Assembly: GCA_964106915.2 (NCBI GenBank)
Contig: OZ066919.1
Length of the DNA: 64,000 bases
From: Podarcis gaigeae
Lineage: Eukaryota
Reading direction: 5' to 3' (one strand)
Below the pieces are notes generated by a model. The model had not been told where the DNA came from. It did not search any database and worked only from the letters and a program-made list of their open reading frames with translations. The stretch's first letter is position 1. The number at the start of each line of letters is the position of its first letter. Made by a program: the position numbers and the translations under genes. Of this stretch, positions 5,431 to 60,080 are shown piece after piece.

Positions 5431-6854
5431 TGTTTTATGTTTAAAGTAGAGGTGGGTAGCCTGTGGCGCTGAGAAGATGGCAAGCAGAAAGAAAATGGGA
5501 GGGGGGCACAATGATAAAGTGAAGGGTATGCCCTGTCCTCTTCTGGTCTCACTTCCATCCACCACTCGTCCTGGCCCTTTCCACCACTGGCAGATACCCC
5601 CTGAAAAAATGTGGTACTTGACACACACAAAATAAGGTTCACCCCTCCTGCGCTTGTTTAAAGAGTAGAAATTGTGGTGGAGGATTTTTTTGTTATTATG
5701 AGAACCCAGAGATATGTTGAGATATGGACAGGGACTAAAGCAGCTGGTTGTAAGCTCTTACCTTCACTTTGACCAGGGTTCAGTGCCTACCCAGCCAAAT
5801 AAGCTCCTGGCAGAGATGGCTTCAGTTTCATAGCTCGGTTGCATTTTGCCAGCCCTGAGTACTTTAGTACCCAGAAAAGACATTTACATTTTGTAGTACA
5901 GGGATGGAAAACTCTACTACTAAGCCTCAAAATGTTGATGAACACACCTTACATTCAGGCTGTACTGTTCTGAAAGTCTCCATTGGTCTGAACTACACAT
6001 TCAAGCCATGCAACTCCTCTTCAGGTATTCAGTCTGCATGCACGAGAGCAAAAAGTGTGTTGGAGGCTGGGCAGCCCCACCTCAGGGTCTTAACATGATT
6101 AGAAGACTCCTCACAATTGGGAATCCTGAAAATGTAGGTTTCCAGATCACAGAAAGGCTTCTAAGCACATTCAGCTAAACACACTTACAAGCCCTTTTCC
6201 AATTTTTTGTCTAAAGTTTTTGTCTAAAGTTAGCAGTGAAGGGAATGATACATAACTCTCTGCCCTCTCATGCTCAGACCAGATACCTGAAGATAGCTGA
6301 AGAATACAATCTGGACAAGTCTTTATTTTTTCATTTATTCCAGTTTTCTTCCATCATTGGCATTCATGCTAGTTTAACAAAATCTCATAAAAACTTCCAT
6401 ATAATAAAAACATAAAACATATAAAATCAGAGAGCATGCCATTATGCATAAATGGCAACAATAAAAGGACCAGTTTAATCATTAACAGTTGACAGAGTAA
6501 CCCAAAACACATCCACAAAAAAAGCAGTGTGAGTAAACAGGACAGGCTTTGCTTGATGCATTTATGATTCCTGCAAAAGGGCCAGGCAGGTTTCCTTTGG
6601 AAAGGGGTTGCAAAGTCAGGGCACAACCACAGAAAAGGCCCTGTTTTCAGTAGTCACCCATCTAACATTGGCAGATGAGGGTACCCAGTAAAAGCCTAAG
6701 ATGGCCATTTCACCTGGTGGGCAGATTTGTATCTGGGTCAGTACAAGCATCAGTTCACACCTTCCAGCAATGTGAGCAGGTGTATCTCCTTTGATCTGTC
6801 AGGTGTGGGCTGTCTCCCACTCTCTGCTCATGCTCCCAATCTCTGTCTCCACAG

Positions 6855-7054
6855 TTCACCTGTACAAATGTGCAGCCCAGCGGGAAAGTTGTGGGTTGTG
6901 CCTGAAAGCAGATCAGAAATTTGAGTGTGGCTGGTGCACTGGAGAAGGGAGGTGTACTCTGCGTCAGCACTGCCCCTCTCCTATTGGTGGATGGGGAAGG
7001 TGGCTCGACTGGTCAAGCAGGAATGTCAAATGCTCCAACCCACGAATCACTGAG
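6855..7054 (+). CDS. PLXNA2: Plexin-A2 internal coding exon (PSI domain to start of IPT), 200 bp
   Basis: Acceptor ctccacag|TT and donor GAG|gtaaag. Translates (V)[66 protein letters not shown], matching recalled plexin-A2 sequence. Confidence 0.95.
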
Positions 7055-7204
7055 GTAAAGATATTTAAATCAATTGGATTTTCTTCCTATTCCATTCACT
7101 TCTTTGCTTGTTTACTTGATTTATCTTTCTATTTTTAAGACAACCCCCCTTTTTTGTATATTACAACTACCTTAATATGCATGTTTCAATAATGTATAAT
7201 GATC

Positions 7205-33237: not shown

Positions 33238-33601
33238 GGGACGCAGGTGGCGCTGTGGGTTAAAGCCTCAGCGCCTAGGACTTGCCGATCGAAAGGTCGG
33301 CGGTTCGAATCCCTGCGGCGGGGTGCGCTCCCGCTGCTCGGTTCCAGCGCCTGCCAACCTAGCAGTTCGAAAGCACCTCCGGGTGCAAGTAGATAAATAG
33401 GGACCGCTTACCAGCGGGAAGGTAAACGGCGTTTCCGTGTGCAGCTCTGGCTCGCCAGATGCAGCTTTGTCACGCTGGCCACGTGACCCGGAAGTGTCTC
33501 CGGACAGCGCTGGCCCCTGGCCTCTTAAGTGAGATGGGCGCACAACCCCAGAGTCTGTCAAGACTGGCCCGTACGGGCAGGGGTACCTTTACCTTTACCT
33601 T
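33238..33601 (+). mobile_element. Young full-length Sauria SINE (subfamily B)
   Basis: Head gggacgcaggtggcgctgtgg, B box ggttcgaatcc, (ACCTTT)n tail, CpG-rich; 8-bp TSD tacttact. Confidence 0.93.
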
Positions 33602-42751: not shown

Positions 42752-42955
42752 NNNNNNNNNNNNNNNNNNNNNNNNNNNNNNNNNNNNNNNNNNNNNNNNN
42801 NNNNNNNNNNNNNNNNNNNNNNNNNNNNNNNNNNNNNNNNNNNNNNNNNNNNNNNNNNNNNNNNNNNNNNNNNNNNNNNNNNNNNNNNNNNNNNNNNNNN
42901 NNNNNNNNNNNNNNNNNNNNNNNNNNNNNNNNNNNNNNNNNNNNNNNNNNNNNNN
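42752..42955. other. Assembly gap (204 N)
   Basis: Run of N, preceded by pyrimidine-rich low-complexity sequence. Confidence 1.
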
Positions 42956-43454: not shown

Positions 43455-43818
43455 AAGGTAAAGGTAAAGGTACCCCTGCCCGTACGGGCCAGTCTTGACA
43501 GACTCTGGGGTTGTGCGCCCATCTCACTCAAGAGGCCAGGGGCCAGCGCTGTCCGGAGACACTTCCGGGTCACGTGGCCAGCGTGACAAAGCTGCATCTG
43601 GCGAGCCAGAGCCGCACACGGAAACGCCGTTTACCTTCCCGCTGGTAAGCGGTCCCTATTTATCTACTTGCACCCGGAGGTGCTTTCGAACTGCTAGGTT
43701 GGCAGGCGCTGGGACCGAGCAGCGGGAGCGCACCCCGCCGCAGGGATTCGAACCACCGACCTTTCGATCGGCAAGTCCTAGGCGCTGAGGCTTTAACCCA
43801 CAGCGCCACCTGCGTCCC
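43455..43818 (-). mobile_element. Young full-length Sauria SINE (subfamily B)
   Basis: Reverse complement of the 33238 copy with about 4 differences; 13-bp TSD ggggctcatgata at 43442-43454 and 43822-43834. Confidence 0.93.
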
Positions 43819-53179: not shown

Positions 53180-54917
53180 GCTTCCCCCTGCCTTGGCATA
53201 GACAATTCTGAAGCAGATGGATCAATGGCCGGAGTTAATATAAGGAACGTTCCTGTGTATTTATGGTCAGGTGACATGTTTCCATATCAGGGAACTTTTA
53301 AATATATATTCTTCCTTTTCTTCAGTTGATAATGAACTTTTCCCTGCCCTGCTTCTGTTCTGTGCCAGTGTCTATAGGCCATGTCACTAATGCATTTTTA
53401 CCATATTTATTTATTTATAAAATTTGTATACCCCCCTTCATCCGAAGATCACAACATAAAAATACAAAATGACAACAAAAGATCACAAGAGATGTGGGTC
53501 ATTATGTTTTCATCTAGATTCACCTTTCTCTTAGACTTACTCTAGTACTCAGAGAGAGAGAAAAGCACTATCAGTGTTGCCTTGAGTACTGATAAACCTA
53601 AACCATTGTTCCCAGCAACCCTACCTGGACTGCAATAGTCTGGCCGCAGTCTGGCCTCAACCATGTTAATTGTTTTTAATCTGGCTTTAAGATTTTGTTC
53701 CCTTTCAATCCTTGTGATTTATGACTGTTTGGATTTTTTATTGAAGACTGGTACAAGTTGGTGTGAAACTTGGAACAGTGAACACACTTGGGTTTAGATG
53801 CACAGCCATTCAATTTTCAGAATTAAATACTTGTTTGGGTCCCTCAGATGTTCCCCTCTCAAGACTAATATTTGATTCCAGTTGTAGAGTTGCAAAGACT
53901 GTGTACAACTGTTCCAGCATTGGCCAGCACCAGAAATTCATTAATGATATGTCAAATGCACACACCTTATACCTCAATGAATTGTGGTGCTGCGGGATGT
54001 TTTATGTTTTTGAATATTGTTGTTTTGCAAGGAGCTTAGAACACCATAAAGAAAGCAAATTTACTGATGCCTTTAAGTGACTTTCAGGAGCTGTTCTTCA
54101 ATAAAACAGCTGAATTTTACTACACGGCAACATGACTTTGTCTGTGTGCATGTTACCGGCAGTACTCAGAGTTCACAGCCGATAAAAAGATCCTCATACA
54201 GGATTGGATATTGACTATGGAGGTCATGAGGAAGTCTAAGCAAGATGTCACATTGATGAAGGGCATGTAGATACGTATTGGTGGTATACTGTGCTGATGA
54301 GCTGTGTGCTTTTATGATGCCTGCCATTTTTCAGGAAGGAAAACCACATAAATCTGTGAAAATGTTGCTTTTGATTACTTACGTTTTAAAACGCACTGCT
54401 GAGGCAGTTCCCCACAAATGTCAAGACTTGAAATGGTAAAACTGATGACTGCAGTTGTGCTTACAGTTATTTGCTCTCAAATCCATTAATATAAATGAAA
54501 TTTAAGTGCACTTAAGTGAGCGCAGTGTTGCTGCTGAGATTCGTACGATTCTAAATGGTAGCTATAGAGCAATACTCTGAAATGGTCTGATGTTTGCTGG
54601 CAGAGCTTTCTTCTTCCTTCTCATTTGTTCTCATTAGGGATGTTTTCAAGGGTCAGAAAAAGTGCTCAATAGGGATACTTCTGAAGCTGAACAGGAAAGT
54701 GGAATGGGCATGTTCCTTGGTCGAACTACCTTTCCTTCTCCCCCTGCCTTTCCCCATTGTTGTATAATTTCAGCAAAATGATATACAAATATTTATTTAA
54801 TTGATTGTTATATATATATATATATATATATATGCTTTCGTAGATTTTCACGGGTACAGGAATGCAGGTTTTGGTGTCCTCGGGTGTCTTCCCGTGTAAA
54901 AGTTGGGGTGTCTAGGC

Positions 54918-54951
54918 GACGTTTCGACGAGGTCTCACTCGTCATCTTCAG
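54918..54951 (-). ncRNA. Minimal hammerhead ribozyme motif, copy 1
   Basis: Reverse complement of CTGAAGA-T-GACGAG-TGAGAC-CTCGTC-GAAA-C-GTC. Confidence 0.75.
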
Positions 54952-55679
54952 GCTGGTGCTTTCGGCTTCTTGTTACTGGAACAGAGCGGGATCTCAATGT
55001 TTGAGTTCCTATAAATACTGTAGAGGGGGTGTGGTGTCTAGCCTCCAATGTTCTGGGCAGAGAGGAAGTTCCCAGGCTAGTGTGCCTTTTCTTCTTTTGT
55101 TCCTTAATTACTTGAGAGATACCTTGAGTGATTTCTTGAGTGATATCCTGAGTACCACTTAGGTGGGTCATACAGAACGCCAACACCAATCAACCACACC
55201 AGACCCAAACCCAGACCCTCTCCACAGATGAATTACTGACACCATCCAGTAGCCAATCCATGGTGGCACCTCCGGATGCTGCACCCCCCTGCAATCCCTA
55301 CACAGATCTGGCTGACACAAGCCACAAAACCACAGCTCGCCCCTATACACGAAGCCAAGCCAAAGCACAACTAAGTGCAATACAGCCATCTTCTCAGGAA
55401 AACTCTTCACAAAGTTCAAGAGGTCAAGACACAAAGACTTTAGCAACTAATCCACACCTATGACCCACCTAAGTGGTACTCAGGATATCACTCAAGAAAT
55501 CACTCAAGGTATCTCTCAAGTAATTAAGGAACAAAAGAAGAAAAGGCACACTAGCCTGGGAACTTCCTCTCTGCCCAGAACATTGGAGGCTAGACACCAC
55601 ACCCCCTCTACAGTATTTATAGGAACTCAAACATTGAGATCCCGCTCTGTTCCAGTAACAAGAAGCCGAAAGCACCAGC

Positions 55680-55713
55680 CTGAAGATGACGAGTGAGACC
55701 TCGTCGAAACGTC
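55680..55713 (+). ncRNA. Minimal hammerhead ribozyme motif, copy 2
   Basis: CUGAAGA core, 6-bp stem II GACGAG/CUCGUC, GAAA, palindromic ACGU stem III and a GUC triplet; predicted cleavage after 55713. Confidence 0.78.
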
Positions 55714-55764
55714 GCCTAGACACCCCAACTTTTACACGGGAAGACACCCGAGGACACCAAAACC

Positions 55765-55803
<39 letters not shown>

Positions 55804-55885
55804 TTTCGTAGATTTTCACGGGTACAGGAATGCAGGTTTTGGTGTCCTCGGGTGTCTTCCCGTGTAAAAGTTGGGGTGTCTAGGC

Positions 55886-55919
55886 GACGTTTCGACGAGG
55901 TCTCACTCGTCATCTTCAG
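55886..55919 (-). ncRNA. Minimal hammerhead ribozyme motif, copy 3
   Basis: Identical to copy 1. Confidence 0.75.
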
Positions 55920-55947
55920 GCTGGTGCTTTCGGCCGAAAGCACCAGC

Positions 55948-55981
55948 CTGAAGATGACGAGTGAGACCTCGTCGAAACGTC
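55948..55981 (+). ncRNA. Minimal hammerhead ribozyme motif, copy 4
   Basis: Identical to copy 2. Confidence 0.78.
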
Positions 55982-56313
55982 GCCTAGACACCCCAACTTT
56001 TACACGGGAAGACACCCGAGGACACCAAAACCTGCATATATATATATATATATATCAGATGGCCTAAACTTCCAGACACTTACCTAGGGTTCAGTTTCTG
56101 TGGAATGAAGAACATTAGAGACTGTGGTGTCTTTATGATATATGGTTTGTTTACACACATATACAACCCAAGCCTATGATGGAGGGGCTTAAAGCACTGA
56201 CACCCCAAGGGGTTTTTGTTTCTCCTATGGCCATAGCCTTGGATTCCAGTAGAAATCAGACATGGTTCTGTCTCCAAGCTGCCTAATCTGCAACCTTGCT
56301 TGTAGCTTCTACC

Positions 56314-59753: not shown

Positions 59754-60080
<327 letters not shown>

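Follow-up and report, generated by a model that had tools for sequence, protein, structure and literature searches.

Minimal hammerhead motifs in probable head-to-head insertions of a Poseidon-type Penelope-like element within a PLXNA2 intron of Podarcis gaigeae

The window analysed here, 64,000 nucleotides of Podarcis gaigeae DNA (contig OZ066919.1), contains a cassette at 54834-56037 that very probably represents two adjacent head-to-head insertions of a 5'-truncated Poseidon-type Penelope-like element (PLE) into the (TA)n of a PLXNA2 intron, with its hammerheads carried passively. Judged by their sequence, the four motifs that it harbors are the known minimal type-I hammerhead found at the UTR/ORF junction of Poseidon-type PLEs. 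The limits originally given for the cassette are correct, and (TA)n both flanks and splits it. Its placement in PLXNA2 also holds. Exon-like ORFs on either side of it (6776-7135 and 59754-60080) correspond to residues 767-835 and 1054-1134 of mouse Plexin-A2, both are closer to Plexin-A2 than to A4 or A1, and the host gene lies on the + strand. The cassette is therefore intronic, and its + hammerheads are sense to the pre-mRNA. No further copies of the cassette were found in the window, the TA repeat excepted.

The hammerhead motif

The 34-nt motif occurs exactly four times, without a mismatch, where the original prediction had located it, and the predicted spacings of 268 nt for the + pair and 968 nt for the - pair are right:

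55680-55713, + strand: hammerhead core, first sense copy, CUGAAGA-U-[GACGAG UGAGAC CUCGUC]-GAAA-CG-U-C; predicted cut after 55713
55948-55981, + strand: hammerhead core, second sense copy, exact match, within the unit 2 sense arm
54918-54951, - strand: hammerhead core, first - copy, exact match, within the unit 1 inverted arm
55886-55919, - strand: hammerhead core, second - copy, exact match, within the unit 2 inverted arm

The number of 34-nt matches expected by chance is 0 (100 dinucleotide shuffles), and a degenerate hammerhead pattern returned the same four sites, with 0.02 expected. All four copies have the catalytic boxes C3U4G5A6N7G8A9 and G12A13A14, as well as A15.1/U16.1 and H17 at the cut site, so the claim that every core residue is present (CUGAAGA ... 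GAAA-CG-U-C) stands. An unpaired U follows A9, after which G10.1-C11.1 closes helix II, as it does in five of five relatives. The start codon of the PLE ORF is A9-U-G10.1 of the hammerhead, and the predicted cut site lies 25 nt past this ATG.

Helix II has the six base pairs attributed to it (-7.1 kcal/mol, z -2.9), and the assignment to the minimal type agrees with the palindromic ACGU that stands where helix III belongs. This palindrome (15.2-16.2) would permit a dimer, with a nested double-hammerhead pairing predicted at -18.1 kcal/mol. The earlier caveat about a weak stem I was justified: helix I is only 2 bp here (GC/GC), and 3 bp, with covarying sequences, in the relatives. The five relatives keep the AUG, G10.1-C11.1 and GAAACGUC; their helix II and helix I sequences differ and still pair. 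All five of the different helix II sequences fold, with both sides changed at most positions (MAFFT set a 1-nt length difference in the helix II 3' strand, and pairs were taken from the individual folds). The stem II covariation looked for in genomic copies is present between families, in these five relatives, and absent within the Podarcis family, where no variant reaches 10%.

The Rfam hammerhead models did not recognise the motif: cmscan of 3 kb and of a 91-nt slice gave no hammerhead model match at E<=10. These models expect a helix III hairpin, and the miss is to be expected because the motif is without helix III. Matches to MIR7723, MIR6288 and similar Rfam models were rejected as perfect-palindrome artefacts, all of them below gathering scores. 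The identification of the hammerheads is based on manual parsing and homology.

Relatives and architecture of the cassette

The Penelope-like character proposed for the cassette is supported by its relatives, in which the motif sits at the UTR/ORF junction of a PLE encoding RT and GIY-YIG domains. A search with a 37-aa peptide of the cassette matched protein P0002; the N-terminal peptide (MTSETSSKRR...) is 68% identical to the P0002 N-terminus, and P0002 runs into the RT/GIY-YIG ORF in L001, a public contig (SRR4426308). The identical 34-mer lies at nt 113-146 of L001, and the ORF after it gives an RVT_1 match (E 2e-17) and a GIY-YIG match that is weak (19.2 bits, against a Pfam cut-off of 22.6). 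Identity to L001 is 100% over 44 nt around the motif and drops to 59% and 79% in the flanks. In tblastn searches, residues 612-707 of P0003, the nearest Podarcis protein (Podarcis muralis LOC144326219), matched 55173..55463 with 85% identity (E 3e-40), and residues 641-704 of L001 ORF2 matched the same piece with 48%. A second relative, L002 from Podarcis muralis, is a head-to-head PLE pair flanked by (AT)n and carrying exact hammerheads. It is 96% identical to the window copy and has one tailed and one tail-less end; its ORFs match P0003, and it shows an open frame through the cassette centre. P0001, a representative search match, was rejected as a relative since it is a spurious repeat protein.

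The Poseidon-type PLE family of wall lizards is very abundant and recently active. Summed word depth reaches 2e5-9e5 across the element, against 67-81 on the single-copy flank. The sequencing runs (Logan contigs) contain many other inverted joints with differing breakpoints, and 21 contigs of run X1 have pure (AT)n adjoining other family ends. The cassette had been called young, and we agree, as its arms are 100% identical and equal to the family majority sequence in the best-matching run. There was no sign of specific expression in run X18 (labelled 'RNA?'), where the relative depth of the element equals that of an unrelated neighbouring repeat. A contig of organism G lacks 54783-56120, including 26 and 65 nt of non-repeat flank; because of this flanking loss it does not represent a clean empty site, and a deletion may account for it.

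Comparison with these relatives divides the cassette and its target as follows:

54809..54833, no strand: (TA)n microsatellite, left part of the target (sequence)
54834..54861, - strand: 28-nt tail of the unit 1 inverted copy, PLE ORF nt +85 to +112 (L001 nt 203-230)
54862..55172, - strand: unit 1 inverted 5'-truncated PLE copy (UTR, hammerhead, first 84 nt of the ORF), 100% complementary to 55459-55769
55173..55463, + strand: last 96 codons of the PLE ORF and TGA stop (tblastn with P0003)
55464..55685, + strand: 222-nt UTR from ORF stop to next ORF start, the 'pseudo-LTR' (alignment to L001 and L002)
55686..55769, + strand: first 84 nt of the PLE ORF, with ATG = A9-U-G10.1, ending at the tail-less RT start site
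55770..55801, no strand: (TA)16 separating the two units (sequence)
55802..55829, - strand: unit 2 28-nt tail, identical to 54834-54861
55830..55933, - strand: unit 2 inverted arm (104-nt arms, 100% complementary, 0-nt spacer)
55934..56037, + strand: unit 2 sense arm (exact motif match and repeat comparison)
56038..56055, no strand: (TA)9, right part of the target (sequence)

In unit 1, a 5'-truncated copy and a shorter inverted one meet head-to-head, and unit 2 is unit 1 minus a perfectly symmetric 698-nt centre. The coding piece at 55173..55463 is the C-terminal tail beyond the GIY-YIG domain, and C3-G8 of the hammerhead are the final 6 nt of the 222-nt UTR. Both + arms end at +84 of the ORF and both - arms at +112; the 28-nt tail is found on the - copies alone, and the L001 ORF continues through the corresponding nt 203-230. 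The direct repeat between the units extends over only 123 nt, and the interval of 268 nt consists of microsatellite and fold-back. No RT or EN sequence was found within 54834-56037, where the PLE copy is without an intact RT-EN ORF, and no Pfam domains were detected in the two small cassette ORFs (96-codon piece included). The cassette copy is a truncated, non-autonomous remnant.

Origin of the fold-back insertions and fate of the transcript

We favor an origin by ordinary PLE insertion, for in this clade reverse transcription starts within the 5' part of the next ORF on a tandem transcript, so that each inserted copy ends with the UTR, the hammerhead, and 84 or 112 nt of ORF. Each arm of the cassette would then be the 3' end of a PLE cDNA, and the four arms would carry the normal minimal type-I hammerheads of the family passively. 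The head-to-head layout may be due to priming on both target strands or to snap-back copying of the first cDNA. Unit 2 could have arisen in this way a second time, or by duplication of unit 1 with a symmetric loss of the centre.

Whether the insertions affect the host is a separate matter. It is possible, if only tentatively so, that their main effect is a long perfect dsRNA in the PLXNA2 intron, formed by hairpins of 311 bp and 104 bp that would serve as an A-to-I editing or small-RNA substrate and would constitute an unstable palindrome at the DNA level. All arms are paired in the minimum-energy fold of the + transcript (-945 kcal/mol), and the miRNA-precursor models in Rfam score the palindromes only as perfect hairpins. 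However, all miRNA matches are far under the gathering scores, and the sequence is explicable without any host effect.

With the cassette still taken as two PLE insertions, the genomic copies of the Podarcis family might in addition record hammerhead cleavage in vivo, some cDNAs having run off hammerhead-cleaved templates, together with a fixed two-site snap-back mode of PLE integration. Among the 15 inverted joints with the best support, two break precisely where the hammerhead is predicted to cut (54917|54918 and 55713|55714). A tailed end (+112) combined with a tail-less one (+84) recurs in each of the three fold-backs that were examined, namely units 1 and 2 and L002, and the centres of two of them are symmetric with a near-zero spacer. 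We regard this extension as unlikely. If either the cleavage record or the two-site snap-back were true, it would be the first in vivo footprint of steps seen only in vitro.

An assembly error at unit 2 (55802-56037), which would do away with the 268-nt sense pair as well, is distinctly unlikely. It might, for instance, have set a shorter allele or a collapsed hairpin read in tandem beside a genuine unit 1 across the (TA)n. Such an error would fit the relation of unit 2 to unit 1, from which it differs by the symmetric 698-nt centre, with both direct repeats continuing into identical (TA)n. Zero-spacer perfect palindromes and TA microsatellites also assemble poorly, neither a listed contig nor a read spans the whole of the cassette, and reads break at the three TA tracts. 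On the other hand, a symmetric near-zero-spacer PLE palindrome is real in the independent record L002, and PLEs tend to insert beside existing copies (PMC6765202).

The original prediction went further and proposed a cis dimer, formed via ACGU by the sense hammerheads with their spacing of 268 nt; cleavage of the PLXNA2 pre-mRNA at 55713 and 55981 would then free a retrozyme-like, perhaps circular RNA of 268 nt. The + copies are indeed sense to PLXNA2, the double-hammerhead pairing requires no pseudoknot, and PLE hammerheads are considered to work as dimers (PMC4209133; PMC6765202). Nevertheless, cleavage by this route appears highly improbable. The minimum-energy fold pairs every nucleotide of both sense motifs with an exact upstream antisense copy, in a competing duplex of -109 kcal/mol per 51 nt versus about -18 for the double hammerhead, and the zero-spacer 104-bp hairpin of unit 2 reaches -219 kcal/mol. 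According to these folding models, long perfect hairpins sequester the sense hammerheads, which are unlikely to cut the PLXNA2 pre-mRNA. Helix I, moreover, is just 2 bp, and PLE min-hammerheads cut poorly in vitro, dimers included (PMC4209133). Poseidon_Ac (PAc), the Anolis carolinensis Penelope-like element studied in vitro by Frangieh et al. 2024 (PMC11167929), has a hammerhead that does not cleave unless the PAc protein is present, and its cut site coincides with neither the start nor the end of any RNA-seq read. The release of a 268-nt unit is likewise not supported, as the interval is no monomer of a tandem family but the microsatellite and fold-back described above. Finally, that the cassette is itself a non-LTR retrozyme, a non-autonomous tandem hammerhead repeat spreading via circular RNA, is barely credible: vertebrate retrozymes derive from PLE pseudo-LTRs and are found in reptiles (bioRxiv 10.64898/2026.07.22.740005), and two sense motifs are spaced 268 nt apart, but the copies hold PLE C-terminal and N-terminal coding sequence and end at PLE RT start sites, the arms are inverted rather than head-to-tail with a microsatellite and an antisense copy in the interval, and the cut site does not form the inner end of any of the four arms.

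Head-to-head insertion of truncated PLE copies is the reading that we retain. From this perspective, the cassette is an ordinary member of its retrotransposon class, young and truncated. Hammerheads, inverted pseudo-LTRs, AT-rich targets and 'tails' have all been described for that class before. The cassette also shows that wall lizards hold a very large, recently active PLE family.

Comparison with known hammerhead systems

The dimeric hammerheads of newt satellite 2 and viroid-like RNAs (Forster et al. 1988), as they are cited in PMC4209133 and PMC6765202, share with the Podarcis motif a helix III too short on its own and a palindrome at 15.2-16.2 through which a double hammerhead can form. 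In those accounts they act in direct tandem transcripts without antisense copies, unlike the Podarcis cassette. Non-LTR retrozymes of animals (Cervera & de la Pena 2020, PMC7229834; Li, Clavereau & Pollet 2026 preprint) have in common with it type-I hammerheads, a weak helix III, an origin from PLE pseudo-LTRs and an occurrence in reptiles. However, retrozymes are head-to-tail tandem monomers that are bounded by cut sites and expressed as circles, whereas the Podarcis cassette is inverted, contains ORF fragments and has no monomer structure.

The comparison extends to the minimal hammerheads of metazoan PLEs. Helix I length aside, all the descriptor features, and the four emergent ones, given for them in PMC4209133 and in Lunse, Weinberg & Breaker as relayed by PMC6765202 are present here. 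In the criteria of Cervera & de la Pena 2014 (PMC4209133), helix II has 6-8 bp kept by compensatory changes and helix I about 4-5 bp; the Podarcis helix I is at the short extreme, comparable to the 2 bp of Drosophila virilis Penelope (PMC4209133). The same study describes motif pairs 100-700 bp apart on opposite strands, an arrangement also seen in the Podarcis cassette, and its named examples include turtle and snakes but no lizards.

PAc, the closest relative to have been studied, resembles the Podarcis cassette in many respects and belongs to a different family, as L001 ORF2 is only 45% identical to the Anolis protein P0047. The Podarcis motif is absent from the supplements of PMC11167929 because PAc is another family. 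Its helix II sequence differs from that of the Podarcis motif in four of six pairs, and the Podarcis loop has one nucleotide fewer, so that GAAACGUC is read in another frame. The layout around the UTR is alike in the two, but its length is 222 nt in the Podarcis family versus 126 nt in PAc, helix I has 2 bp versus 3 bp, and the Podarcis cassette copies are truncated and non-autonomous, unlike PAc.

The likeness begins with the hammerhead, which in both lies at the UTR/ORF junction, with AUG as A9-U-G10.1 and the ATG at the start of helix II; GAAACGUC is kept and helix III is absent. The cut site is 26 nt past the ATG in PAc versus 25 nt in the Podarcis cassette. PAc and P0002 also have a common N-terminal protein motif, LYGE...EKL...LLC...FL..CRD (aligned by eye). 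In PAc, RT starts at ORF +111-118, with an optional 30-40-nt tail between its two RT start sites (PMC11167929). Similarly, inserted copies have two alternative end points, at about nt 84 and nt 112 of the ORF and separated by ~28-40 nt. PAc has an AT-rich target, and the target of the Podarcis cassette is (TA)n. Both DNA strands are cleaved and extended by PAc (PMC11167929), which fits the head-to-head copies of the Podarcis cassette. The value of the cassette is modest: it is a clean natural example that matches the Anolis in vitro rules base for base, namely, a start codon within the ribozyme, two RT start sites, and priming on both strands.

The cassette and its hammerhead motifs

The 34-nt motif CTGAAGATGACGAGTGAGACCTCGTCGAAACGTC occurs four times with 0 mismatches, where 0 copies are expected by chance, and a degenerate hammerhead pattern found the same four sites in the 64-kb window and none besides. 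The sequence description in the original prediction is real, and exact search and repeat analysis showed its motif coordinates, its spacings of 268 and 968 nt and its (TA)n flanks to be correct. Exon-like ORFs at 6776-7135 and 59754-60080 show a distinctly better match to residues 767-835 and 1054-1134 of mouse Plexin-A2 than to Plexin-A4 or A1, which makes PLXNA2 the host gene, with its coding sequence on the plus strand. It follows that the cassette lies in an intron, as had been proposed, and that its plus copies are sense. Repeat analysis resolved it into two units, and a search of the window found no further family copies.

Features of the cassette
54834-55769, unit 1: 28-nt piece, arm, 286-nt centre, arm
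54834-54861, 28-nt piece of unit 1
54862-55172, left arm of unit 1, 100% complementary to the right arm
55459-55769, right arm of unit 1, 100% complementary to the left arm
55461-55463, TGA stop of the Penelope-like element (PLE) ORF, followed by a 222-nt UTR
55802-56037, unit 2: same 28-nt piece, then two 104-nt arms that form a perfect palindrome with zero spacer
55680 and 55948, plus strand, 34-nt motif, exact match
54918 and 55886, minus strand, 34-nt motif, exact match
54917/54918 and 55713/55714, joint breakpoints at the predicted cut site

Unit 2 is unit 1 less a symmetric 698-nt centre, and (TA)n, the target of the cassette, flanks it on both sides and separates the units. By tblastn, the 'centre' of unit 1 (55173-55460) corresponds to the last 96 codons of a PLE ORF (85% to the Podarcis muralis protein P0003, E 3e-40). 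With this C-terminus, followed by the TGA and the UTR, unit 1 is a 597-nt 5'-truncated plus copy joined head-to-head to a 339-nt minus copy. Plus arms stop 84 nt and minus arms 112 nt into the ORF; the tail is this difference of 28 nt.

This tail is present on one end only in all three of the fold-backs examined, namely units 1 and 2 and L002, the locus of P0003 (2394-7048). The arms of unit 2 and L002 are symmetric and separated by 0-5 nt, a layout suggestive of snap-back copying and not of two independent priming events. Among the 15 listed family joints, two (54917 to 55172 and 55083 to 55714) break exactly at the predicted cut site, with about 0.3 expected by chance; they could be a trace left by cDNAs that were copied from cleaved RNA templates. 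The former joint has the 55172 breakpoint in common with the window locus and may derive from a related duplicate.

Relationship to autonomous Penelope-like elements

Every feature of minimal PLE hammerheads listed by Cervera and de la Pena (PMC4209133) was found in the window motif, and opposite-strand motif pairs 100-700 bp apart have been reported for PLEs (PMC4209133). Rfam hammerhead models gave no match to the motif, as expected because it lacks helix III. The 37-aa peptide from the window ATG matched the N-terminus (residues 1-37) of the PLE protein P0002 at 68% identity in a representative library. L001, the contig of P0002, carries the identical 34-mer and the ATG, followed by an ORF in which RVT_1 was recognised (E 2e-17) and GIY-YIG matched weakly. 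Aligned with L001, the window copy is 100% identical over 44 nt around the motif, 59% in the UTR and 79% at the ORF start, which makes the 44-nt block a conservation island. The best relative of the L001 protein is P0003 (85%). L002 contains a head-to-head PLE pair within (AT)n, with an exact hammerhead at each outer end, one end tailed and the other tail-less, and an almost spacer-free centre; the window plus copy is 96% identical to it. Together with the ORF C-terminus in unit 1, these matches bear out the Penelope-like identity first proposed.

P0004, from Vipera latastei, shares 83% identity with the PLE protein of L001, close to the 85% of the Podarcis muralis protein. This is high for a lizard-snake pair and may hint that this PLE family was transferred horizontally.

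Within the Podarcis family, no motif variant reaches 10% in any of four runs, so that a within-family covariation test is uninformative. Four more PLE relatives with RT ORFs (L003-L006, where L006 is genomic PAc of Anolis carolinensis) all keep the AUG as A9-U-G10.1, G10.1-C11.1 and GAAACGUC; their helix II sequences differ yet pair, and their 3-bp helix I sequences differ too. Covariation between families is thus clear. The 'extra' conserved nucleotide after A9 is, in this PLE clade, the U of the ORF AUG. Two of the four have the already known U3/A8 core variant (UUGAAAA and UUGACAA across these PLEs; L003 117-150 and 3028-3061, L005 174-208). These variant relatives, which come from metagenome and Logan contigs, retain the start codon A9-U-G10.1.

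Abundance, age and flanks

In three organisms, the element reached a summed word depth, which does not equal copy number, of 2e5 to 9e5, while the single-copy left flank stood at 67-81. Many contigs have inverted joints at other breakpoints, and fold-backs are therefore a family habit. The majority sequence of the best-matching run (X1) has no base differing from the window copy, the sole variant listed being a 1-nt insertion at 55459, in agreement with the young age claimed for the cassette. About ten diagnostic positions (55230-55604) set organisms B and G apart from the family of organism A, where the B/G letters make up <0.3% of the depth. The flanks of organism B are those of organism A (0 differences in 324 nt), whereas organism G differs at 10 of 308. 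Family subtype thus disagrees with flank similarity; very recent bursts within single lineages, or introgression, may be the reason.

One organism G contig at single-copy depth (record 9 of run X13) joins 54782 directly to 56121; the cassette and its TA tracts are missing from it, together with 26 + 65 nt of flank that is not repeat. This form may have arisen by deletion or may be an empty site, though not a clean one, as flank has been lost too. An organism B contig of near-equal length (1470 nt, 129 letters beyond 54782) probably has the same form.

The right flank (56082-56250) is another very high-copy repeat (summed depth ~2e5), and many family copies diverge at 56101 and 56117/56118. Two ORF-like stretches, 33271-33588 (minus) and 43468-43785 (plus), ~10 kb apart in opposite orientation on either side of the N run 42752-42955, have near-identical translations and are probably two copies of a further repeat.

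Effect on the PLXNA2 transcript and comparison with PAc

The original prediction held that the two sense hammerheads could dimerise in cis, cut the PLXNA2 pre-mRNA and free a ~268-nt retrozyme-like RNA. However, the minimum-energy fold of the plus transcript leaves no nucleotide of either sense motif unpaired, the partner in each case being the antisense copy transcribed immediately ahead of it, and the double hammerhead (-18.1 kcal/mol) is predicted to compete with a 51-nt duplex of -109.3 kcal/mol, the unit 2 hairpin reaching -218.9. Low or protein-dependent activity has been reported for PLE hammerheads (PMC4209133, PMC11167929), and helix I of the window motif has only 2 bp. Because of this pairing, these energies, the short helix I and the reported activity, cutting of the PLXNA2 pre-mRNA is unlikely; nor is the 268-nt interval a retrozyme monomer. 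If there is any consequence, long intronic double-stranded RNA is more likely. The cassette belongs to a known retrotransposon class, as an ordinary member, recent and truncated, that carries the usual ribozyme.

Among studied elements, PAc, a Poseidon PLE of Anolis carolinensis (PMC11167929), comes closest. Its hammerhead is inactive without protein, and no RNA-seq read starts or ends at its cut site (PMC11167929). The PAc ORF begins where helix II begins, with the cut site 26 nt past the start codon (PMC11167929); in the window element, the ATG is A9-U-G10.1 at 55686 and the predicted cut site lies 25 nt past it. Reverse transcription of PAc has two adjacent start sites within the ORF, 111-118 nt in, which account for the optional 30-40-nt 'tail' of its genomic copies (PMC11167929), compared with 28 nt here. 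The PAc protein cleaves AT-rich DNA, of which it extends both strands (PMC11167929); the target of the window element is (TA)n.
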